In this document: positions 4,111 to 64,000 of the stretch, piece by piece
Layout: each line of letters starts with the position of its first letter
Position numbering within the stretch: the first letter of the stretch is position 1
Assembly (NCBI GenBank): GCA_025201805.1
Contig: MU619278.1
Span: 129,738 to 193,737, forward strand
From: Parasitella parasitica NRRL 2501
Taxonomy: Eukaryota > Fungi > Mucoromycota
Direction: 5' to 3'
DNA: 64,000 bases
Notes under the pieces: model-generated
Database searches by the model: none
Told to the model about the DNA's origin: nothing
Seen by the model: only the letters and a program-made list of their open reading frames with translations
Position numbers and translations under genes: made by a program

Positions 4111-7100
4111 CTTGATTCTGAACGAGCAATGATAATGCGCAGAAGTAGAGTAGGCTTGTATGCGTGTGTATTTAAAGAGACAAGACGAGAGCCGTAAGAG
4201 GGAAAGTTTTTATAAAGAAAAACGGAACCACACTTTGCTGTTTTGTCCAGGTTGATTTTCTTTTATTTGATTTAAACTGTGTAAAGAAAAAGAAAAGAAA
4301 AGGAAAAAAAAAAAAAAAAAGAATATTTCGACCGTTCCCAAATCGACCAGCTTCTGCTAATGTTTATCGCTTGAAATCAATTGATAGAAGAAGGCTTGAT
4401 ATCAAACTTTTCTCATTGGTAGCTACGTCATGTTAGGTAGACTCATTGGTTCAAATGCCCTTTGAGTCGACCAAGACCAAAGAACAAGCAGTCTTTTCAC
4501 ACGCAAGAATAAGGCAAGATCCCCCTCTCTTTCCCACCGTCGAAGCTAGTTGCCCGACAATAGGCGGCTACTGAACGGAAGCCCAATGATACTTGATTAT
4601 GTATATGTTTTCAGATGAGACCATAAGGTTAAGAGGATCACATCGTTTACGCTGTGAATGTGATCGTAAACATGAAACATTTCATCTTGACATTTAATCA
4701 AATCCTTTGTGTCATTACGGTGATCCAAGCATTTTAATTGTGTTTCTTTGTCTACATTATATCAATTGACATAATTTGTAATATTGGAACATGACACGAC
4801 ATGTGTTTAATCCGTTATGATCACAGCTTGATGATGGGTCATAGTACATCTATTTACTCAAAACTTTATTTGCTGTTATGGTATCATACCAAAATATGAA
4901 AAAAGCAAAGCAAATAAAAATCAGAAATTGGCGTCGTCTGTATAAAGCAATTTGTAATTGTCGCGAGCATCTTCTAACTATAAATTATCTTCGTCATCAT
5001 TACTGTCATTCAAGACAGGCAAAAATATACTTCGGTATAACAATAGCGAATCTATTATAGTGTTTCTACAGCAGACTGTTAATTAAGAGAGACAGCTTTT
5101 GCAGCTGTACAATTCAGTATTCCAAACACATTAAAACATCTTGAAAGAAAACTTGCTCATGTTATCAACCACGCAAAGAATCTCCTTTTAACTCGATTAC
5201 AAGCATGGTTTGATTTTAGTGTCGCCTCATACGGCTTTTTTTTCTTTCTTTTTGCCAGATCCATTTATATCAAAAACACTATGCCAATTTCATCTATTTC
5301 AATTGTAAACATGGGCACCACTGCATCATTAAAATCAGGCTTAACTCCTTCGAAATTGAGTGCTATACCATAAACAGTAAATAAAAGCTGTAGCATAAAC
5401 CATCGCATAATGGCTGTCTCTTGCTTTTGCTGCAGATCCATATACATTGTGAAAATAAGCCTTGATGCCAGTTTTCGTTTCAAATCTATCAAATAGGTAA
5501 ATCTTACCTTGTAAGAGTCAACAAAGGTAAACCAAAATTAAATGAAACACATATATGACACCTTTATTAATGTCGTCTATTTATACAATATTCTTGACTA
5601 ATGGTCCATGTAATTACGCCTAACGAATTCTTGTTAAAAAACAATCCTATTATTTTATAATTTTGTTCTCAACAATTGGTAAGATTTAATAGTCCTTCAT
5701 TACCATCTAGTTTACCTTCTATCAAGTTGGCTTTTCGATAGTATATCATATACTACCCAGACTCAAACAAACTCCTCAGATAATTTTATCCTGATTCGAT
5801 CTTTGATTTTAGGCTAGGATTTTTAGATGATGATCAACAATAATGTTTTACATTTTATAATTTCAGATTTAGTGGTGTTGTATTCATCTTAAAGGCCACA
5901 GCATATGCTGTAAGTAGCAAAATTACGCGCGCGGATCATAATGTTTATTGTTGGTAATTCTTTTTTACAAATAGGGGAATAAGTTACACGTTGTAACTGA
6001 ACCTCTTGAATGAATCTAGGCTTATTCAAAGATTACATCAAGGCCAGATTGCGGAATGTCGGTAGGACGTGTTGTCTATACTTTTTTTTTTACAGTACAA
6101 AACGAAGAATGGATCTGTTCTTGGAAATTGTTGATGTGCCAGAACGGCATCGAATTAAGCAATTATTAGATTGGTAATTATTTGTATGCATGACAAGGAG
6201 TCAGTTATTTTGATGTACAATAACATGTAGTAAACTTGGTATGTAATGCCAAGTTTAATGTCCAACAATGTTGACAAATAGCCTTACAATTGATTTAATT
6301 CTGTATAAAAAGATGGCAGTTTCTCATAAATAAAGTCATTAGTTTTTGTGTCTGACCTTATTTTTATAAAGCTATACATTTTTTTAGATTATATTAATAT
6401 AATATTTTCTGCGCATAACAAAAATGCTGTGATTTAATAGTATTTGGCACTTATTGTCGAACATCAAATGTTACAAACAGATAAAGATTGCTTATTGTTA
6501 CGCGCAGAGGATATACGAATTTAATCTGCTCACAAAAGGTATAAATTTATGAGAATAAGGTCAAACACAAAAATTAAAAAAGACTTAACTAATGAGAAAG
6601 TGTCATCTTTTTATACAAGATTATATATCTATTGTAAGGCTATTTGTCATCATAGTTGGACATTAAATTTGGCATTACATGCCAAGTTTACTACATGTTA
6701 TTGTAAATCAATAACTGACTCCTCCTTGTCATTAATGCATAGAAATACTTACTAATCTAATAATTGCCTAATCTCATGCCTGTTGAGATCTGCAAGATCG
6801 AAATAAGAAAAGTATTAAATAAAACGTTGAATTAACGAGATACGAAAACTTGAGATTACTTTATTAAAGATTCAACTTTGCATCTGCTATTTATACTTTT
6901 TACAACTACATAAATTTTTGGTGACTTATTTAAAATACTAGTCGATACTAATCGATAAGAATAATTTGCAAGCAACATCACATATCCTTAACAGGGTAAG
7001 ATTTATTAGTATACTACAAGACTGTTGATCTTTGATCTGACAGTACCTTATTTTTTGTCAATCGTACATATCTGTGATACAGGTAGCCTTTTTGATTTGA

Positions 7101-11068: not shown

Positions 11069-12166
11069 GAGTATTTTCGTCTTCTCTTTTCATATAAGCC
11101 GATGTGAAAATGCAAGAAAATTAATCAAAAGAAAGAAGATTGTTTTTGCTTTTCTTTTTAAACGATTTCTGCTTGCACCAACGGTTCAAAGACTGCTTTA
11201 TGCCATTGCTACGGCATGCCGCAGAAACAAATCCAGCCTGCCGACGCAGCAAACTTGCGCAAGGATATTAGAGACAAAAGCACAGGCCGTGTGAGCTATT
11301 CTGTAAGAACCAGATGTATGCAGCGAATATAGGTTAAAGGCATTAGGAACAGATACAATGCTACATTGAATCTTGTCCAATACTGCTAATTATCCCATTC
11401 ATAGATATAGTATGACCTTCCACGGTCTTTGATTCCGATCGCTGCGAGCTGTTTGTAGTATAATGCCAGTGATTTTCGTTATACCTGATCAAGCGCAAGA
11501 GCCATCCTTGAACTGTCAGCAATGCTGCACAGGCATCTGTGGTATACTATAATACCCACGTCATCCAGTATAGCCTCCTCTCTGTACATATATGTCTACT
11601 TGATCTCAAGTATAGAATGTCGTGTAACTCTAGTCTATAGTTGCACAATACTGTTACATTTTAGCTTGTAACAAACACGAATCTCCCTGTATCGCATGTG
11701 CTATATATAATACACACATGTACAAAACAAAAGTTTATCTTTTTCGTGAGTGAATAAAAAGAGACAATCTGTTTGTGTTTTGCATCTGATTTATGCACTG
11801 CATCTGTACGCAACCGAACGGTAGAGGTTAACCATGTTGTACCTTTGTTTCTGCATGTCATACACACATAAAGAAATGAGAAAAGAAATCTAAATGGCGT
11901 GTAACATGTAGATTTGTTATGAAGAAAATAAAAAAAATCAATAGTATTTAGATGTACATTTATTAGTAAGCGAGAAAGGAAAGTGAATTATGTATATGTT
12001 GTCAAGTACTATGGAAAGTGTTTGCAAGTGGGTGGTTAGAAAACAGGGTGATTGTATTAGTGTTATTATTATTAGGTGTTGTATGAGTATAAAGATTGGA
12101 TGAGAAATGTGGCTGTTGGCTGGTGTAATGTGAGATATCTAGTGGGCGGGTGCGTTTTCTACATAT

Positions 12167-14024
12167 TTATTCCTCGTTATCCTCATCAAAGAACTTTTCA
12201 GCAACAATGTATTTGTCGTTTGTTTTGTAGAGTCTCTTGATACAAGCAATAGTCGCAGGCAAGGTCATGAATGCCCAGGCAGCAATAGGCAAGGATATGT
12301 AATCAAAGATGTTGCGCCAGGTACGAGACTCAGTCTTGCGATACAGTTCCCGATCAACGACTCGGTGAAGGTGCTCGTAAATGGCCAAAGTACCAAACAG
12401 CGGAAGAGGTAAAAATACAGTGATGATCTTGACAATGTTCCACAAGTTGGCAAAGAATTCGGAGGTGAGGATAGGATTTTCAGAAGGTTCGACAAAGGCG
12501 ACCATCGAGTGAGGTGGAAACAGGATAAACTGCATCAAAGGTACTGCAGCAAACATGAGCCAACCTGAGGTGACAGGAATCAGATGAGCTTCCATCACCT
12601 TGGTACACATGACAAGCTTGTCGAGCCAAAAGCTCGGTGCGGCGTACATGCTCGTCTTTTTGGCTGTGAGTGAAGCAAATACATGATTTCCATCCAACAC
12701 GGTATCCTTGACACCGAAAGAGTTGCGCAGAGTGTAAGCAAGATCGGCAATGCCGTTGTAATGGCGCTTAGCTTGGACAAAGCGAGCATGCATATTGGCA
12801 ACATAGCCAGGAGTTTGGACGTTGGTCAAATTGATGGGTACAAAAATAGGGCAACAGCGAGCGAGTCCATCTGTCTTGAAAAAACACTTTAGCATCATGT
12901 GCATGTCCTCACCAACTGAATCAGCGTCTGTGTCCCAGTAGCCAACTCTTTCTGCCAGAACCATGCTAAGACTGTACGTAGAACAGGGAAATGAGAGTCC
13001 AGCACTGTTGCTCAAGCTGGACATGACCATGGCAGACCAGGTAATATCAGTCATTCTCACTGCAGCGGGAACTTCGTAACAGTTGCGGGAAAAGAAGATG
13101 GGTGGAGCAAACAGCAAAAAGTAGGGATCTTCTGCTCTGTTGAATGCCTTTTCGACCTAAATCATGAATTATACAGTTAGCTTTGGTTGTAATAAACACA
13201 TGTAACCACCATTACCTCGTTGGTATACAGCTCGGGGATAGATGAATCAGAATCGGATACAGTCAAGATAACCCGTCTTCTATCGATGCCTTGCTGCAAC
13301 ATTTGTGCACAGCCATGTCTTGCAGCATACGCTACATTGGAGCCCTTTCCGCGCGTTTCGCCGGGAATGTCAGCAGGATGAGCAGTTACAATAAACTGAA
13401 GAAAGCTATCCTTGAAATAGTCTGCCAGATTGTTTGATTTCTGTTCGTAATTCATTTCAGAGGCTTCCATGGCCAAGATAATGACATAGTTAGTCTGAGC
13501 ATTCCTATAATTTGTTTGGTTGTTTAGTACTGTGTCCTTCCCTTGATTCCCTTCTCCCCTCTTAACCCCTTTATTTACTTGTGATTGGCTAGGCGTTTGA
13601 TGGTGTCTCTCAATAGAGCCTCTGGCTCTGCATAATTAGGAACGATAAAAGCATGAATGAAATGAGAGTCATCGTATGGGTTCAATGCGGTTTCCATTTC
13701 TTCGAGCTCCTCAACCGATGTGATTCTTTCGCGTGTAGTAGTAGGAGAAGGAGGGCTAGTGGTAGTGCTGTCGGTCTTTTCTGCGCTGCTTTTGTTAGAT
13801 CTAAGGTTCCATTCACGAATGGTTTTCGTCATTTTGGTTGCTGTGGTGTAGAATTTGAATACATGATTTACTTGAGTGTACAAAAAGACGGCAAAATAAA
13901 CCAATAAAAATACAATGTAGGTACGAGGGATCAATAGAGGACCAAGAGGTAGCAACAGGACGGACCCAATGGCTACCATGGGAGCCACCAACTCGAATGG
14001 ATAATTTAATAGGGCTGCCTTCAT
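12167..14024 (-). CDS. Membrane-embedded GT2-family glycosyltransferase, 3 exons
   Basis: N-terminal TM helices; PNYAEP, RGKGSN, DSDS (DxD), GEDMH and QAKRH (QxxRW variant); C-terminal TM helices. Confidence 0.8.
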
Positions 14025-55534: not shown

Positions 55535-56304
55535 CACCAAGTCAGATGTTTTATACACATTACCTAATTTTAAAAAATTCAAATTGTCTGCCGTGTGTCG
55601 TTGTAGAAGTTCAGTACACTGGCAATATGTCCTTTTATCGTCCATTGATCGATTATGGTTTATCGGTAACGAAACGATATTCGGTATCTCCAGTTGTACT
55701 TGCCATTATCATTGCCAATACCACGACAGAATTGTCTGATCTTGCCGTCTACCTTGCCATGGTTGGGCAAAATCTTGCTACTTGCTTAATTCTTCATCGA
55801 TTTCTGATCATTTGCAGTTCACTTCTCTTAATCCACTCGTCGCTCTGGAATATTTCCTTATCCAGCAAAAGCCATCACTACAATTTGTTGATCGAAATTG
55901 ACGACAAAACGATCCAATTACTCTATACCATTGCGCAACAAATTTTTGTTGATGGATTGAAGCAAATTGAATCAATGATCATGGCAAAAGATCTGGACGA
56001 AATCCGCGATCAATGTACACGGGCAAAATCGTATTTGCTTGAAGATGTTTTAGATGAAAGCTCAAAAAAACGTACTGTAGACTGTTTAGATAAAGTGTTA
56101 GTAAGGGTTGACGAGCCACGAAAGAAGCAAACAGGATATGTACTGTGAAATAATACCAATAATCTGGTAATCAAATATTGGCAATTGGTTGACAAGCACT
56201 ATGAAGACCATGGCCCATTAAATTGGGAAACCATCTTTACGCTTGGTAAAGCAAAAGAGCTTTCTGGTAGTTATTCAAAATAGACCAGTGTCAAATCAGC
56301 ATAA
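55535..56304 (+). pseudogene. Rpn/PD-(D/E)XK_2-like nuclease pseudogene, copy A (5'-truncated, frameshifted)
   Basis: Across frameshifts it reads TKSDVLY / LPCVVVEVQ..SFYRPLIDY / CHGWAKSCYL..NPLVAL / DDKTIQLLYTIA / LNWETIFTLGK..SYSK*TSVKSA. It is colinear with copy B. Confidence 0.7.
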
Positions 56305-57726
56305 GGTATCTTAACTTCGATTACTTTTTAAATACTGCTTTCGCATCGTTTACTTGACAATGACATTTATTTTTTTTCGTTCCTGATATTTTAATTTTCT
56401 CAAAAGTGAAAAAATTTGCCGTCCTCATTGTAACATCTTTTAATATCTTTATGTTTGATAGAGAAATCTAACGTGCCGATATTTTTCGGTAAATATTCAG
56501 CATTTGGAAAACAAAGCTCTGGAATCTAAAAGTATATTTTTAAATCTTATTCACCCAAAAAAGTAATACGAAAAACCAGTGGTGAATTGATCTATTGCTA
56601 CTAGAAAGCCAAAGAGCCCCCTTAATCTGACTCCAAAGACTATTATACCTTTTGCAAATGCAATCGAAATGAATTTATAAAAACCCGCCCATTCAAAGAA
56701 ATCAAATCGCTCATATTTCAGGAGAATGATTCGTGCTTAGGACGTGTATTCCAATTGCAGCTCCTCAACGATATAGACACTTTACTCAAGAAATAGACAT
56801 AGGGAGCCGAGAAATACAAAAAGCTTTGTAGTTTACATTATTGTCCGTTTTCATTTTAGACGAATGTTGTGCTACATCCAGAAAACAAAAAAGAAAATGA
56901 TGTACCCCTTCTTTTTCCATGCGAGTCAATTGATTATGCATCTTGCATTGCCTTTTTTCCATATTACCATTATTCAACATGTACCCAAACAGAATCCCTA
57001 CTTTTTGCTACTTGTAGTGGAAAGCGTGATTTTCATCATATCTCTTAACCTTGATACATGGTATAATGATGCGAATCAAAAGACTGTTTAAAACACAACA
57101 GTTTAAATTAGTCAGGATCATTATTGTAGATACATGTTGGCCTGGGTATATATTTTAGGTGCATATATTGCAATTAGGCTTGTGATTCGTGTGTAGAGTA
57201 CTGTTATAGGCTAATAATATGCGTATTTTAGCGGGAAACAAAGCCTAAACAAAGGAGGCCATAGGTAACTTTATATGAATGGTGGCCACATGTGATTGTA
57301 GGGTGTTTCTTCTTAATACAATGTACGTCATTTCATACAGAAAAAAAAACGGATTTTGCATAACAAATATACGGCTCTATAGAAGTGATGAGAAATCACA
57401 TTATCATTATATGACATGAATTCGTTGTCTCTATAATATAACCGTTAGTTTGGCCTTTGCACTCCTGAATTCTTCATATTCTTTCCAACTCATTTAATAG
57501 AAAAGAAATTCGACAAGAACATTGCTAAATTAGGTACATGACTTCTGTAACTCATACTAAAGTAAATACCAGCATGTTGCACTAAATTTCAAGCCTCCCC
57601 ACTTTCTTTTTGGCATGTTAAACATCACATTTCTGTGGTATATATAATGAGCTTTCAATACCTTCAAATTTCTTTCTTTTTCCTCATCTGTAACATATTA
57701 TCTATCCACCCATTCATTTACAAATC

Positions 57727-58138
57727 ATGAAGTTCAGCGTATTGTCATCCTTCATCTTCTTGCTCATTAGCGCAGCCTTCTTTATCCAGTCTTCAAATGC
57801 ATTATCACAACCATCAGAGTTAACTGCACTCCATAATAACCCCCGTAGAAACGTGGCTAGGTATGGGTCATCTATAGCTATTCAATGATTTGTTTCACTA
57901 ATGCTTGTCATTAAACAGTTATTTAGCAAAGAGAAAAACATCCAGCAAGCCCAAGAGTTGCGATGGAGAATGTCCTTTAAAGCTTCCCTCATGTCCAAAA
58001 GACTGTCCTCAAACCTGTGGCTATAAAGGTGAGTTAAATCTACAGACATTTAAGCGACTCTATTTTGACAGTTATATAATAGTAAAAAACGATGGATGCT
58101 GTGTGATACTCACTAGCCCATTTTGCCCTGATACATAA
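57727..58138 (+). CDS. Small secreted cysteine-rich prepropeptide (8 Cys), 3 exons
   Basis: Signal peptide MKFSVLSSFIFLLISAAFFIQSSNA; pro-region ending in LAKR; mature C-x3-C-x6-C-x3-C-x3-C-x8-CC-x7-C; two phase-consistent introns; TATA-like sequence at ~57639. Confidence 0.85.
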
Positions 58139-58197
58139 GCTACTGTACACTATTCCCAAGAAAAAAAAATACTGTAATAAAAATCAAATAAACTTTA

Positions 58198-58792
58198 TTA
58201 GTTACATCTTTCATCTTGCAGCATATCTTTTAACATGTCCACTTTTTGCATTATTACTAGGGGCAAATGTTTTGAAACATTACATGTCCACAAAGCAAAA
58301 GAGCTGATTGCTAAAATTATACCTAGTATTGTACCCACTGTCACCTGAGCTTTCGTATGGTGCTGTAGATGCACACGAGACCAAACAACAGAAAAACAGA
58401 AACAATAAAAGGCGATCAGCAGCAAATATTTGTATGGAATTGTTGGTGAAACGAGCACCACGCAAGTTAAATAGCTCGTAAAAAAGCTAATCGCTGTGGA
58501 ATGGGATGACGGCATTCCGTAGCTCTCTTTGACATGCTTCATGCCGCCAACAGGCACTGGACGAGGTTGTTTTATTACATTCTTCAGTGCCTTTGCAACG
58601 AGGGTCGATGCTATGGCACTGACAGTAAAATACACCATATGCATTGAGCGCAAGTACACAAGCGCAAGAAAGGTGCATGTAATGACAATTTCACGAGTCT
58701 ACATGAATATAGAGCATTAGTTGTGTTGAAGAATAATGAAAATTTCTATTTACAAGAGCTAATAATTTCAATATGAAGGTACTGCTTGTCAT
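58198..58792 (-). CDS. PAP2-family dolichyldiphosphatase-like protein (CAX4/DOLPP1), 2 exons
   Basis: KNVIKQPRP, YGMPSSHS and SRVHLQHHTKAQV are the three PAP2 motifs. Confidence 0.88.
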
Positions 58793-58838
58793 TTTGCCAT
58801 GTCGTATATAAACAGTTGTCAAAAAACGCGATTTTAGG

Positions 58839-58869
58839 NNNNNNNNNNAAAAAAAAAAAAAAAAAAAAA
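58839..58869. other. Assembly gap (10 N) abutting a poly(A) run
   Basis: N run at 58839-58848, followed by an A tract. Confidence 0.97.
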
Positions 58870-59605
58870 GGCAAGTACCAGAAAGGAATGCCAATTATAT
58901 GCTGTACATCTCATGCATCAAACAGAACAAGACATTGTGGATTACAGGTTTGACAGGCATTTAGACGTGAATAGTCTTTGCAAAGAATACGTGTCCTAAT
59001 GCCTGCTGAAACATGATTATTAGCACAAATGGTAGTTAACTTGCCTATATTACAAGACCCCGGCCGCCCCAGTGCTAATAGGTTTTTCATTGTTATACAT
59101 ACATATATTTGTACATCAGCACTTTGCCACATTCATTGCTTATCACCGAAAGTGATTTTGACTCAACACTCATTCAAAATCTCCCCTATAAAATGGGTTT
59201 ATACTGTTAAATGGGATATACGGCCTAATCTTGCAAATCCACAATGATGAACTGTGAACATTGGAAAACATAAAAACCATGATATACGCATGCATATGTT
59301 AAACAGGTATGGGATACTGGATCCCGCGTGCCATCTATAATACCACCACACGGATTCGTTCCTTTTCTCTGATATGTACAGCATTTACCAACATAATCTG
59401 TGCAATCAGGACTGTTTGGTTGTACACGATGATAATGACAGCTCTTTGCTCTCGGAAAAAAATTAATGGGTCCAAAGGTTCTCGATTGGCAGGTTATCAT
59501 CTTTGATTTCTTCACCATTGACGATATCCTCGGCAAGGCCCTCTCATATTTTATCAAAAAATAAAATCGGCGAGGATGAGGTTTTAAAACTCACTGAATT
59601 TCATA

Positions 59606-60180
59606 CAGTGCCTCCTCCAATTTTCGTTTTCGACCAAACTGATTTCGTTTTGGTCTCTGACCAGATAAAGTCCAATTTTCGCTTTTTTATCGGCCAAAGT
59701 TCGTTTTGGTAAGGCCACTTCTTAAGTTCGTTTTTGTTCGCTTTAAAGCTCGCTTTTACATCACTCAATCTTCATGTTAAATCTCAAGGTTGAAAGTTGT
59801 TGACAGAGTGATTCGCAATGTTGTGAAGAGCTTTTCTGCTAGTACTTTTGCCTGCTTCAGTAAATCTAGTTTTCAAGTCCTCAGTGCCCGTAGACGCCAT
59901 AACAGCAAAAGCTGTCATTGCCCGTGAGATCAGAAAGTCTCTGAAGCCCAAGAAGATCAAGATTGCTGGAGACCGAAAGAGAAAGTACCCTGTTGGTAAA
60001 AAGATGCCTAAAGGAGCTGTTACTGGGCATTATATAAAATTCATAGCTAAAACACTAGATGAACTGGACAAGTTTCCTGAAATGAAAGGTTTGGACATTG
60101 CCATGGATTACACCTATTCATGCCTCGCAAGATATGACAATGATCGAGGCAAGAGGCTATAAGGTCTTATATCTTCCTCT
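59606..60180 (+). mobile_element. Fragmented Tc1/IS630-like element: left TIR plus catalytic-domain fragment
   Basis: TA|CAGTGCCTCC terminus with repeated TTCGTTTT motifs (59606-~59770). 59890-60180 encodes AITAKAVI..PKGAVTGHYIKFIAKTLDELDKFPEMKG..MD(fs)TPIH..IEARGYKVLYLP. Confidence 0.8.
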
Positions 60181-60328
60181 TTAAGACACTGAGGACTTGA
60201 AATAAAATAACAGAAGTAACGAAGCGAAAAAAAATGATCTTTGGGGCTATATGGTTCTTCAACCCAAATATTGTATATTTTTACTATGTATAATAACATA
60301 TAGAAAGCATGATTATCAAGGAGTTGAA

Positions 60329-61353
60329 CTACAGAGTATGTCGATGAAAAGCCATTTTGAGTGTGGAAAAGGAATTGTATCTGTCGAAAAGATTTTTTTT
60401 TTCAATTCCCTTAGTAGCAGGAATCCTATTTCATCTTCCCTGGGGTTTTCTTTATATAAGCCTGTACGAATATAAGATCCTCTGATTCTGTAGTTGCAAT
60501 TGCCAACTTTTCTTTCTCTATGCAACGTCGTTTAAAATGATCAGCAAAGCTGATGCCATTCTGTGCATATTTCATGATACGCTTTCTTTAGGCTTTGTCA
60601 TCAGATTCATTGTTTTTGGACTCTCTTCTTCACTTGAGATGTGATTGCATTGCAGAAGGATTCTATCTGGGTGTCCTGAATGACGTTGTTATCAAACTTC
60701 TCATTGAATAGTTCGCTTGCTATATTATAAATCTTTTGTAAAGCAGGATCCATATATTCGTCTAAAAAAACAATATGCTTCTGTTGCTGTGTTGAGAAAT
60801 GAATCAATGCAATCATTTCTGGCATAGGTACTTCTGTTCGTGGCGCAATGGAATCAGCATTGTATATGTATACTTTTTTTGCCCAAAGTGAACTACGTAG
60901 TGAATAGTATGGTTCATTCTCTTGTTTGATAAAACCCTCCTCGCGAAAACGTTTGCTTGAAAACCCATTAATATTGACGATCACAAAAAGTGGAAGAGTC
61001 TTTTTGTTGCCAAATATATTTAATGAATATCTCATCAAACGTGTTATAAACTCCTGAATAACCTTGTTCTGAATCTCCACTATGATAAATGGAAGATTCT
61101 TTTTGTTGTCTTTAGGATAGTATACTATATCAGATCGTGTGTTGTCATTGTGCTCTGTAGGTCCAATATAATACGCCAGAGTGCAAATACTATCACCCAC
61201 AACTGAGCTGATTAGAATATCTTCTACTTTTTCTGTGCGAAACAATGCCTTGCTGCAAGAATCAGTTCCAGGTTTAACCGGTAAGGACAAATCGTATATG
61301 TTTTCAGCATGAAGGGCACTGTATGACGTATCGTCTTAAGTGGAAGTTGACAT
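60329..61353 (-). pseudogene. Rpn/PD-(D/E)XK_2-like nuclease pseudogene, copy B (near full-length)
   Basis: ATG at 61353 with a stop at codon 6; PGTDSCSKALF, TRSDIVY..IIVEIQ..FITRLMRY, LWAKK and DPALQKIYNIA motifs; frameshifted C-terminus ending ..YNSFSTLKMAFHRHTL*. Confidence 0.78.
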
Positions 61354-61559
61354 TGTTATTTACAAGTAAAAGGAAAGAGAAATTGAAAAAAAAAAATTAT
61401 ACAACAAGTTATTAAATCCATGTACACAGCCAATTTATTGGTATATAAATCTATGTTATGTGATTGTTTACTTACGCCAACATTGTAGTTGTAACATAAT
61501 CAAGTAAATGAAGGTTTGATAATCACTCCTTGCCTTCCGTTGGTTTAAAATTTCATCAA

Positions 61560-62917
61560 CCATATTTTATTTCGTCAGTTTCCAAACTTGATTTCGTCAA
61601 ATTATGATTTTAATAAATCTCGTTTTTTTCAGTGCACTGGGAAAAGGATTGCATGCTATGGTTGACCCATCCTTGGCAAATTTCAGCAGATACTTCTAAG
61701 TACTCTTCCTTATGTGTTCAACCAAAACATGAGTACCTCTCATAGCAGGATTTCTTCTGACTAAGGTTTTTAGCTTTGAGAAGCATTCCTCAATCGGATT
61801 GAGGAAGGGAGAGTATGGAGGCAAAAGGCACATTTGGTGCTGAGAGTTCTTGAACAACTCTTTTACCATGAGTGCCTTGTGGATGCAGGCATTATCCATG
61901 ACGAAATGGTATGAACCAGCCCCAGTATCATCCAATTCCTTCATAATGCCTTGGATAAACTCCTTGAAGATCTCGCCAGTTGTGCCTCCTTGGACCTTCT
62001 TGACAGAGACATCTTCAACGCCATGATACGAAATGGCTGCAAGAATGGAGACGTTGACAGCCCTCTTGGATTGCGTGAACACAACGCTCTGGCTCGTTTT
62101 CTTAGAGTATCCAATCCCACGAACCAAATTGGCATTAAAACCAGCTTCATCGACAAAGATACAATTGTGGTTGTATGCAATGCCTTTTGTCTACAACTTG
62201 TTAACATACTCGATTGTGGCGGCTATGTTTCTTCGCTCTTCAACAGGTTTGACGCGAGTTAAAGTATAGCCAATGTGCTCTACAAGAAATCTCCATAGAC
62301 CACTGTCTGCCAGATCAGAAAAGCTGCTCATTAGCTTTTCTTTTAACACTTCAAGCGTTTGAATGCAATCCTCGTCAAGAGTTTTTTGTAAAAAGAGCCA
62401 ATGATCTTCATTGAACTTGGTAGTTTGCCCCTTTCTTCTTCCTCTTTTCAAGGGCTCACTACGACCTTCCTGCCTGTAAAGATTTACCTGGATACTACGG
62501 GTAGCGCGACTGACACCCAGTTCTCCAGCAGCCTGAGAAATTGTCTTATCGCCCATCGTATCACGATATTGGATAGCCAGGTCTCATAATTCTTGAGAGA
62601 GCTTTTTGTAAGCTCCTCTTAGACCCCTATGATGGTTTCTTGAGGGAAACTGTTGCTTATTGATGTTTTCCTTTGAAGTTCTGCGGGTAGTCACCATTTT
62701 GTAAGCTTTAAAGTTAATGTTGAAAGTAGAGAAAGAGAGAGATTAATCCTTAGAACAAATTCTTTTAAATAGAAACACTGGTAACACTTAAAAAGACACT
62801 TTGGAAAAAGCGCCATCTCAATGACGAACTGCTCATCATTATTACATCTTGACGAAATCAAGTTTGGAAACTGACGAAATAAAATATGGCTTTTGCTCAA
62901 TTTTGACCGAAATCCGG
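61560..62917 (-). mobile_element. Tc1/IS630-like DD34E DNA transposon with disrupted transposase and TIRs
   Basis: Perfect 41-bp inverted repeats at 61560-61600 and 62849-62889. ATG at 62697; HTH; FVDEAGFN and VMDNACIH-(34)-NPIEE motifs. Premature stops at 62584 and 62191 and a 3' frameshift. Probable outer right end CCGG|TA at 62917. Confidence 0.93.
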
Positions 62918-63673
62918 TAATAGGCTAACGTGGCTTTCTCATTTCAAGTATTCAAGGGCGACGGTTAACAAGTATTAAAAATCCATGAGCAAGTGCAGAG
63001 GGTTAGATTTCATCTCTCCTTTTTTTTTTCTTTTTTCTAAATGATTACTGAGAGCATAGATTAATGCGAGACATAATATTTGGTCTCTCGACCAAATCGT
63101 TGCATGTTAACATCGACGAATGTGGAAATACAACACATTTTTCAAGGACATGCCAATCAATCTGTTGGATGGATGATCGTTAGCCGATGGCAAGTATGCA
63201 CGTTATATTGAATGTCTTTTGTTGTATGTGCTTGTAGTAACGAGATGCAGAGAAATGCCTTCTATGTCAGTGCATTTCAAGTTTGTGGCTCGCAGTAAGG
63301 CTGTTTACCGTCAAAGAAAGAAGAAATAAATTTTCTGAATATTGTTGCAATTATGTTAGAAATTCCCTTTTCAACTTTTATACACTCCAATGTAAGATAT
63401 TGTTGCTTTACAGCCAAATTCAATAAACAGGTAGATCAACAGCAGCGAGAGAGGCAGCATGAACATGGAAAAAAAAAGGGGGGGGGGTGTTATTATCATA
63501 AATGTGATCAATGCCAAAACGTTCTGGGTTTTGACATTTATACACCATTGATGGCCACTACTGCGACTTTTTGAGAAATGCGCTTTGTTGCTGTGTCGGC
63601 CATGTGCATTGTTGTTATCCAAATTTTATGAAATTGTGCATTATTCATGAGAAATACCGATTTGGTCTATTGG

Positions 63674-64000
63674 GTTAGCCTTCTTGTCCAAAAGCGTCTT
63701 GCTGCCTCTGTCCTCAAGTGCGGTCAAAGAAAGATTTGGCTAGATCCCAATGAAGTCAACGAGATCTCCAATGCCAACTCTCATAAGTTTTCACTGTTCC
63801 CGACCCCACTTTGCTATACTCATACCTAGCAACAGGCGCCGACATTCGTAAACTCGTAAAGGACGGTCTTATCATTCGCAAGCCCGAGATCTCTCAATCT
63901 CGCTTCCGTGTTCTTGATCGTGCTGCTGCCAAATGTAATGGTTGTCATACGGGTCATGGTGAGAGAAAGGGTACTGCTGATGCCCGTATGCGTGTCCTCC
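63674..64000 (+). pseudogene. RPL19: 60S ribosomal protein L19 (eL19) pseudogene, intron-containing, runs off the window
   Basis: [45 protein letters not shown]. The intron donor GT is mutated to AT at 63783; conserved KRxGRH has become KCNGCH and GKRKGT has become GERKGT. Confidence 0.85.

Follow-up and report, generated by a model that had tools for sequence, protein, structure and literature searches.

Background

Bacterial Rpn/YhgA-like nucleases promote RecA-independent recombination, and to our knowledge their link to mobility has long been unclear. Tc1/mariner transposases cut both strands unaided, and Bao and Jurka reportedly found in 2013 Fanzor1/TnpB-like nucleases in eukaryotic Tc1/mariner and other DNA transposons, including those of Mucorales. 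This work deals with a PD-(D/E)XK nuclease gene and the Tc1/mariner sequences adjoining it in Parasitella parasitica NRRL 2501 (GenBank assembly GCA_025201805.1), within a stretch of 64,000 nucleotides of contig MU619278.1 (positions 129,738 to 193,737 of the forward strand), hereafter the window, whose first letter is position 1. A preliminary description made from this DNA had proposed an undescribed mobile element at 60185-62959, with a nested Tc1 and an Rpn-like nuclease as its only gene, the enzyme being either the mobiliser of the element or its cargo. The element is refuted as drawn and the locus is a decayed relic; the nuclease is most likely a passenger of Tc1/mariner elements and not its own transposase.

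A survey of PD-(D/E)XK enzymes from 2012 listed the YhgA-like and DUF2887 families as bacterial only (PMC3424549). According to the same survey, YhgA-like genes occur in Burkholderia rhizoxinica, the endosymbiont of Rhizopus microsporus, which is a conceivable bacterial source of the fungal family (PMC3424549). A literature search on PDDEXK, Rpn or YhgA in fungal, mucoralean or eukaryotic transposons returned no relevant report, and the association of the family with Tc1/mariner elements appears to be undescribed.

A nuclease gene joined tail-to-tail to a Tc1/mariner element

The conserved unit in the window spans 59603-61531 and consists of a nuclease gene (copy B, Table 1) joined tail-to-tail to a Tc1/mariner element. 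The unit was compared with a locus of Benjaminiella poitrasii (L046), with which it is collinear in three stretches: window 61531-60221 corresponds to 9830-11154 of L046 (76% identity), 60183-59896 to 11403-11695 (87-88% identity, synonymous divergence (dS) 0.14) and 59778-59603 to 12553-12739 (74% identity). This collinearity takes in the 178 nt upstream of the start codon, the gene, its 3' flank and the tail-to-tail Tc1. The homology passes through 60185, one of the two ends that had been proposed, and stops at 61531, 12-16 nt short of the complete Tc1 at 61547-62905, without resuming beyond it. Therefore, this Tc1 is not nested in the nuclease unit, as had been supposed, and the 1.4-kb unit that would be left by its removal does not exist. 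Outside the unit no alignment was obtained, and those Benjaminiella flanking genes with a detectable match fall on other contigs of the P. parasitica genome (67-76% identity, in exons only, the intergenic DNA being unaligned).

The presence of a Tc1 in the interval was confirmed. The element at 61547-62905 contains a DDE_3 domain (E 3.5e-22) plus weak helix-turn-helix matches, its terminal repeats lie at 61560-61600 and 62849-62889, and its transposase reads towards the nuclease. It is a multi-copy element, with at least eight other repeat matches in the genome, and no TA duplication could be cleanly read at its ends.

The 18-base motif taken for the terminus of the proposed element, GACACTGAGGACTTGAAA, does begin at 60185. 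It represents the codons for (G/D)TEDLK of a Tc1/mariner transposase, and one copy is present in each of two oppositely oriented Tc1 pieces. Two matches of such quality were found by the window search, against 0.12 expected, which is beyond chance. The inverted pair described earlier is thus real, the copy at 59871-59888 matching at 17 of 18 positions, and the actual repeat is longer, comprising 59857-59889 and 60185-60216, both of which match Tc1 copies elsewhere in the genome. The motif occupies the homologous place in the Benjaminiella Tc1, within an open reading frame (ORF) that contains a DDE_3 domain (E 7.6e-25), is homologous to the Tc1 pieces of the window and reads ...QFQDTEDLKTRITEAGK... 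at that point. In the window the C-terminus of the transposase is encoded by the minus strand of 59780-59889 (GTEDLKT...NNFQP, followed by a stop), which includes the 59871-59888 copy of the motif. Hence, contrary to what had been stated, 60185 is not where the Tc1 fragment ends; the motif itself is Tc1 sequence, and the Tc1-derived stretch reaches approximately 60216-60245.

The piece at 59603-59889 aligns with both Tc1 ends of the Benjaminiella locus, and the piece at 59896-60183 is oriented towards the nuclease just as its Benjaminiella counterpart is. Relative to Benjaminiella, the window has lost about 72 nt ahead of 60185-60216 and about 150 nt behind it. The window copy is frameshifted and carries deletions; its DDE_3 membership was established through its 88% identity to the Benjaminiella ORF. 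In canonical copies of this Tc1 (L037 and L041; contigs C74 and C87) the relative orientation of the two pieces is opposite to that in the window, and a multi-copy contig obtained from public reads contains an opposite-strand joint of 59886 and 60183 that agrees with the canonical copies. It follows that this Tc1 has been rearranged in the window, which produced the facing inverted repeat as a by-product. The Tc1 end beside the nuclease is truncated in the window, in Benjaminiella and in the Rhizopus stolonifer-labelled assembly; the sole readable end is that at 59601.

As for the second proposed terminus, the match at 62942-62959 on the plus strand (13/18) was missed by a motif search allowing three mismatches and has no partner in the related loci. 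It is no better than chance, because six other matches of 13/18 to 14/18 are present in the window, when 3.7 were expected in shuffles (maximum 8). With transposase codons at one end, a chance match at the other and the Tc1 outside the unit, the element of about 1.4 kb bounded by 60185 and 62959 does not hold. A motif match downstream of copy A (56414-56431, also 13/18) was considered as a terminus and discarded, being at chance level too. At the left boundary, the possibility of a Tc1-like terminus was likewise considered: CAAGGAGTGATTATC of the window resembles CAATGAGTGATTGTTAC of the R. microsporus arm. This resemblance is short and its orientation varies among lineages, and it was not relied on.

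Seven public runs from six studies contain the stretch, and no joint skipping the unit was found in the public runs that were compared. The diverged run X11 covers only the flanking genes (85-89% identity, on separate contigs). Run X10, aligned with 58001-64000, differs nearly always by C>T (282) or G>A (499), as in bisulfite-converted DNA, and it is because of these changes that it shares no 31-mers with the locus despite covering it.

Copies A and B of the nuclease gene

Copy B was compared by tblastn with the intact 344-aa protein of B. poitrasii (P0002), to which it is 67% identical; the closest proteins to copy B are those of other genera of Mucorales (52-66% identity). Of the nuclease ORF of about 1 kb that had been reported, the nuclease-like reading frame is present on the minus strand, and it is not open: codon 6 is TAA, the frame shifts twice (at about 60616-60653 and 60363-60412), and no fewer than three more in-frame stops follow, including one where the family has the invariant W313. 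Judged from these lesions, copy B is a pseudogene. The open stretch 60607-61290 retains the D, E-I-Q and R motifs (SD...VEIQ...R), and the comparison with Benjaminiella gave a dS of 1.05 and a ratio of nonsynonymous to synonymous divergence (dN/dS) of 0.19. No second DNA-level copy of 60190-61545 was found in this genome. In an RNA-like run one contig covers 60340-61335 with a low depth, about 1/40 of that over the neighbouring gene, a coverage that does not establish strand or transcription.

A second decayed member of the family, copy A, is convergent with copy B. At the Circinella minor locus (L048, 10001-19815) a B-type and an A-type copy are arranged likewise, and convergent pairs of strongly diverged paralogues are frequent in the family (copies A and B of the window, C. 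minor, and contigs C153, C68, C45, C54, C1 and C4).

The encoded protein

The alignment of the family contains a conserved E, D, V-E-I-Q and R, followed by a helical C-terminal part with a motif of its own. Q95 is invariant, and D75, E93 and R105 are conserved or nearly so. By profile comparison with hhalign, D75, E93, Q95 and R105 align with D63, E82, Q84 and R94 of Escherichia coli RpnA (P 0.0027, probability 11%); the catalytic D, E-x-Q and R have the order and spacing of RpnA. Mutations of D63, E82 and Q84 (Q84K) in RpnA abolish all three of its phenotypes, whereas for Q84A and R94A it is the recombination phenotype that is abolished (PMC5350276).

The Pfam gathering score of the family models was not reached by any member. 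The best matches, all of them sub-threshold, were to DUF2887 (E 6e-4) and Transposase_31 (YhgA-like; E 0.006), each in 3 of 11 members, and these were the only Pfam families that recurred among the weak matches. Both were also the nearest named clusters in a language-model feature search. The structure model has a mean predicted local distance difference test score (pLDDT) of 61, the core (residues 40-130) lying at 62-83. A Foldseek search of the PDB gave matches with E values all above 0.08, most of them to Hjc, NucS, cap-snatching and Bax1 nucleases, i.e. PD-(D/E)XK enzymes, and VIA-align returned NucS with a Z of 7.1 over residues 31-129. Nothing significant was obtained with Foldseek against the PDB and a wide VIA-align search, the list being dominated by a helical hairpin (residues 220-282), and a sequence search of the PDB with the family profile gave nothing relevant. 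The intact genes are under purifying selection (dN/dS 0.12-0.19). All named homologues are "hypothetical proteins" of Mucorales, and the family comprises 1180 clusters at 50% identity in public data (E 0.001 or better). The assignment of the family to the Rpn/YhgA-like PD-(D/E)XK nucleases, already proposed in the preliminary description, is supported at the level of the predicted catalytic motifs.

The junction in other genera

The junction between the nuclease gene and the Tc1 is common to at least six genera: Benjaminiella, Phycomyces, Thamnidium, Circinella, Gilbertella and, in an assembly so labelled, R. stolonifer. The neighbouring genes differ wherever genera were compared, and only the two Circinella species share gene order. 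The differing neighbours indicate that the unit stands at non-homologous sites; neither insertion polymorphism nor target duplication was seen. In R. microsporus (L056) the same gene is placed between 377-nt arms that are 99% identical and carry the C-terminus of a Tc1 transposase. The high identities of the Benjaminiella locus to those of Phycomyces and the R. stolonifer-labelled assembly suggest transfer, as far as the labels of these assemblies, which are unverified, can be trusted.

Some further arrangements were observed around these genes. In Gilbertella persicaria (L058, 1200-8599) perfectly matching inverted arms of 719 and 2005 nt are contained in a palindromic region of at least 7.4 kb, and in the P. 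parasitica genome palindromic duplications with nuclease genes or their fragments occur at C62:148558-149472 and C21:47972-52141. Short units, for example the 9-mer TTACTTTCG or the hexamer GTATCG, form tandem arrays at Tc1 ends flanking nuclease genes and are inverted on the two sides. These arrays are located at L047 12170-12345, L048 9859-9964 and 11123-11218, L058, L006 1336-1457 and 3356-3465, and L060 3190-4651 and 7652-8960, the units in L060 being longer.

The family in the P. parasitica genome and its inverted repeats

A profile search of this genome revealed about 56 distinct family loci, the majority being fragmentary or interrupted by stops. Twelve paralogue loci were surveyed with flanks of about 1.5 kb, and four of the twelve are enclosed by long near-identical inverted repeats (L011, L019, L006 and L007; Table 1). 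The repeat family of L011 has other members in the genome, one of which, on contig C10, adjoins both a DDE_3 ORF and a decayed copy of the nuclease gene. L011 is thus placed between repeats that are also used near a transposase, whereas the copy B unit is bounded by one true Tc1 end only. Flanking inverted repeats were also found at family members of Circinella, Gilbertella and L060, and some family genes, two members in all, are enclosed by two facing copies of a Tc1 transposase gene. Inverted repeats of at least 40 nt occur at only two loci of the 64-kb window, both of them transposon-like. A listed DDE_3 hit is found no more than 3 kb away from seven or eight of the approximately 56 loci, when about 1.6 would be expected with even spacing, a crude control given that transposons cluster.

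Many Tc1 DDE_3 hits with identical scores occur as inverted pairs, plus copy first and 2.4-8 kb apart, on contigs C46, C128, C25, C66, C30, C29 and C45; among these a nuclease gene is enclosed by the C45 pair alone. A central segment with a transposase gene facing it from each side may be a general architecture of Tc1 in this genome.

Table 1. Features of the window and related loci (identities to Benjaminiella refer to L046)
Feature	Location	Strand	Remarks
Copy A, second decayed family member	55576-56301	+	N-terminally truncated, frameshifted; profile hits; convergent with copy B
Tc1/mariner 3' end piece	59603-59889	-	Terminus TA-CAGTGCC at 59601-59609; matches Tc1 copies on contigs C74, C2 and C27
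Internal piece of the same Tc1 transposase gene	59896-60183	+	AITAK...MD, then frameshift; inverted relative to 59603-59889
Motif of the preliminary description	60185-60216	+	DTEDLK codons plus remnant; inverted copy of 59857-59889
Nuclease 3' flank	60221-60328	-	78.5% to Benjaminiella; merges into degenerate inner part of Tc1 terminal repeat
Copy B, pseudogene of the Mucorales Rpn/YhgA-like PD-(D/E)XK family	60329-61353	-	tblastn; profile match E 2.8e-88
Region upstream of nuclease start (178 nt)	61354-61531	-	88% to Benjaminiella; left boundary of conserved unit
Separate complete Tc1 of another subfamily	61547-62905	-	41-nt perfect terminal repeats; transposase in two ORFs
R. stolonifer-labelled assembly	L050		Nuclease 5'-truncated; 91.6% identity to Benjaminiella across 2.27 kb
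Phycomyces nitens	L055		Flipped Tc1 interior; 87% identity to Benjaminiella
Thamnidium elegans	L047		Shared internal Tc1 deletion
Circinella minor, C. umbellata	L048, L049		Shared internal Tc1 deletion
Gilbertella persicaria	L058		Internal Tc1 deletion as in Thamnidium and Circinella; unit present twice, in a large perfect palindrome
P. parasitica paralogue, intact 338-aa gene	L011		137-nt repeats, 99-100% identical; left repeat starts TA-CAGTGCGG; two internal boxes per arm
P. parasitica paralogue	L019		Repeats of 277 nt, 97% identical
P. parasitica paralogue	L006		Repeats of 104 nt, composed of hexamer arrays
P. parasitica paralogue	L007		99% identical arms, 530 nt or longer; contain DDE_3 transposase reading towards the gene

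The 178 nt preceding the nuclease start probably represent a promoter/5' region or the end of an element. Its 88% identity to Benjaminiella, despite the near-saturated synonymous sites of the gene (dS 1.05), may reflect a constrained non-coding element or a later replacement.

Other features of the window

A palindromic structure of about 635 nt resembling a miniature inverted-repeat transposable element was observed at 6146-6780, with inverted repeats of 46-88 nt and 81-92% identity. The genes neighbouring the interval, 58026-58754 (PAP2-like phosphatase, minus strand) and 63647-64000 (ribosomal protein L19), are spliced and well covered in the RNA-like run, in which introns are visible at 58027-58080 and 58699-58753.

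Passenger, host gene, parasite or transposase

We consider it probable, taking the explanation as a whole, that the interval is made up of a Tc1 pseudogene tail, a dead nuclease gene with its upstream region and an unrelated Tc1, that the family is a passenger of Tc1/mariner elements in Mucorales and that copy B is an immobile, decaying relic. Nuclease genes are physically linked to Tc1/mariner repeats and transposase genes, and many copies are decayed. The cargo alternative of the preliminary description, loosely resembling Fanzor, is supported at the family level by L011, L007, L006 and L019, by R. microsporus, Circinella and Gilbertella, and by the junction with its varying neighbours. According to this explanation, nuclease-bearing units would owe their movement to a DDE transposase, acting in cis or in trans, rather than to the enzyme they carry. 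The nuclease, whose activity is predicted, would break DNA and thereby favour the persistence or spread of the unit, and its breaks may drive the palindromic rearrangements and flips around the gene. A more far-reaching version is put forward tentatively, namely that these are an undescribed Mucorales class of Tc1/mariner-derived units whose second gene, the Rpn/YhgA-like nuclease, would have a real role in the life cycle and would also cause the palindromes and long-inverted-repeat architectures around it; it might cut transposon ends or empty sites for copying and retention, or work together with the DDE transposase.

Several observations weigh against the passenger explanation. The left boundary at 61531 shows no target-site duplication, no matching terminal repeat and no TA, and units of the Benjaminiella type do not have two good ends, the Tc1 repeat beside the nuclease being truncated; no clean TA duplication was found around 59603-61531, L050 or L011, and the right end of L011 reads CACTCG, without a clean TA. 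Approximately two thirds of the paralogues examined have no inverted repeats within 1.5 kb, and of two further members from other genomes, one (L060) has large inverted arrays and a nearby Tc1, the other (L059) has neither, inverted repeats being absent within 5 kb. The arms of R. microsporus both run into assembly gaps, and in R. microsporus and Circinella the Tc1 ends point at the nuclease, placing the gene between Tc1 copies and not inside one. Tc1 ends that face the gene would also be expected if two Tc1 copies formed a composite, or if a selfish gene inserted at Tc1 ends. The B subfamily is single-copy in each genome, except for the two palindromic copies of Gilbertella, and shows synteny between the two Circinella species together with a deep synonymous divergence (dS 1-2), all of which fits old vertical inheritance as well. 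Moreover, neither a transposition event, an empty site nor polymorphism was seen in runs X1 and X7, the two of the seven runs that were compared, and the divergence between the window and Benjaminiella units is a mosaic (dS 1.05 for the nuclease, 0.14 for the Tc1 piece, 88% identity upstream). Recent horizontal transfer as the cause of the similarity to Benjaminiella was rejected for the nuclease on account of its dS of about 1.05; judging from these divergences, it may account for the similarity of the Tc1 piece and of the region upstream.

As a rival explanation, the genes could be an ordinary, fast-evolving host family of Mucorales, serving for example in defence or repair, that resides in transposon-rich regions and has acquired its Tc1 and repeat surroundings by independent insertions and local rearrangements. 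Purifying selection on the intact genes, the Circinella synteny, one B-type gene per genome with deep dS, the many paralogues without flanking repeats and the richness of the window in transposons would all agree with this. We regard it nevertheless as unlikely, in view of the identical nuclease-Tc1 junction amid different neighbours in at least six genera, of the near-identical long inverted arms at two deeply diverged subfamilies from different genomes and assemblies, and of the Tc1-type TA-CAGTG end around L011, which is common to other elements; most copies are, besides, broken, like those of transposon families. Less probable still is a selfish nuclease gene targeting Tc1 ends, that is, a unit of about 1.15-1.45 kb (promoter, nuclease and short tail) that would be copied by repair in the manner of homing endonucleases and would be a parasite of transposons and not their cargo. 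It would account for the Tc1 ends that, in R. microsporus and Circinella, face the gene on either side, for the Tc1 of a different subfamily ending 12-16 nt from the unit boundary in the window, for the similar size of the central segments in unrelated subfamilies and for the break-like palindromes and flips (perfect inverted arms of more than 2.7 kb in total in Gilbertella, the flipped Tc1 interior of Phycomyces and the head-to-head Tc1 pieces of the window). However, neither a defined target sequence nor an intact uninterrupted target was found, the ends of L011 are of the Tc1 type and face outwards in the normal way, and the characterised relative RpnA has little sequence specificity (PMC5350276).

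The other alternative of the preliminary description, in which the PD-(D/E)XK enzyme would act as transposase for a terminal-repeat element containing no other gene, is very improbable. Repeat-nuclease-repeat units of 1.4-1.9 kb without any other gene do exist at L011, L019 and in Circinella. Nevertheless, neither end proposed for copy B holds up, the repeats of L011 belong to the Tc1/mariner kind and occur also on elements lacking the nuclease, of which one adjoins a DDE_3 ORF, and no repeat family is common to different nuclease subfamilies. Wherever terminal repeats could be read, they were either of the Tc1/mariner kind or, in the longer arms, contained DDE_3 transposase genes, which argues against the nuclease as mobiliser.

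Comparison with known systems

If the passenger explanation is true, this would be the second case, after Fanzor, of a bacterial-type nuclease riding eukaryotic DNA transposons, and Mucor, Rhizopus and Phycomyces would offer a tractable system for studying the function of a passenger nuclease. It has a bearing on annotation too, the genes of the family being all recorded as "hypothetical proteins" and many pseudogenes, as here, being called as genes.

The bacterial Rpn/YhgA-like (Transposase_31, PF04754) and DUF2887 (PF11103) proteins likewise have an N-terminal PD-(D/E)XK core (D...E-x-Q...R) and a helical C-terminal part, and Rpn genes, like the Mucorales copies, are found in variable genomic contexts. 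Unlike bacterial Rpn, the present family is eukaryotic, so far from Mucorales only, and physically linked to Tc1/mariner, and its C-terminal domain has its own motif (GKMKW..CY..G, LK.AFHR). The likeness to composite transposons and to Tc1 relatives with long inverted repeats lies in R. microsporus and L007, where near-identical Tc1 copies or transposase-containing repeats surround a central gene; it is limited in that the outer ends lie beyond the assembly gaps of L056 and beyond the limit of the locus in L007. Tn7 carries TnsA (PD-(D/E)XK) and TnsB (DDE) side by side on one mobile unit, but TnsA belongs to another PD-(D/E)XK family and the Mucorales pair is known as neighbouring genes alone. 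With Fanzor the family shares a bacterial-type nuclease that rides as a non-transposase gene in, or attached to, DDE transposons, as well as the many diverged and decayed copies. The two differ in that Fanzor has a RuvC fold and is RNA-guided, whereas the Mucorales family is of the PD-(D/E)XK type and its placement relative to the terminal repeats is less regular.

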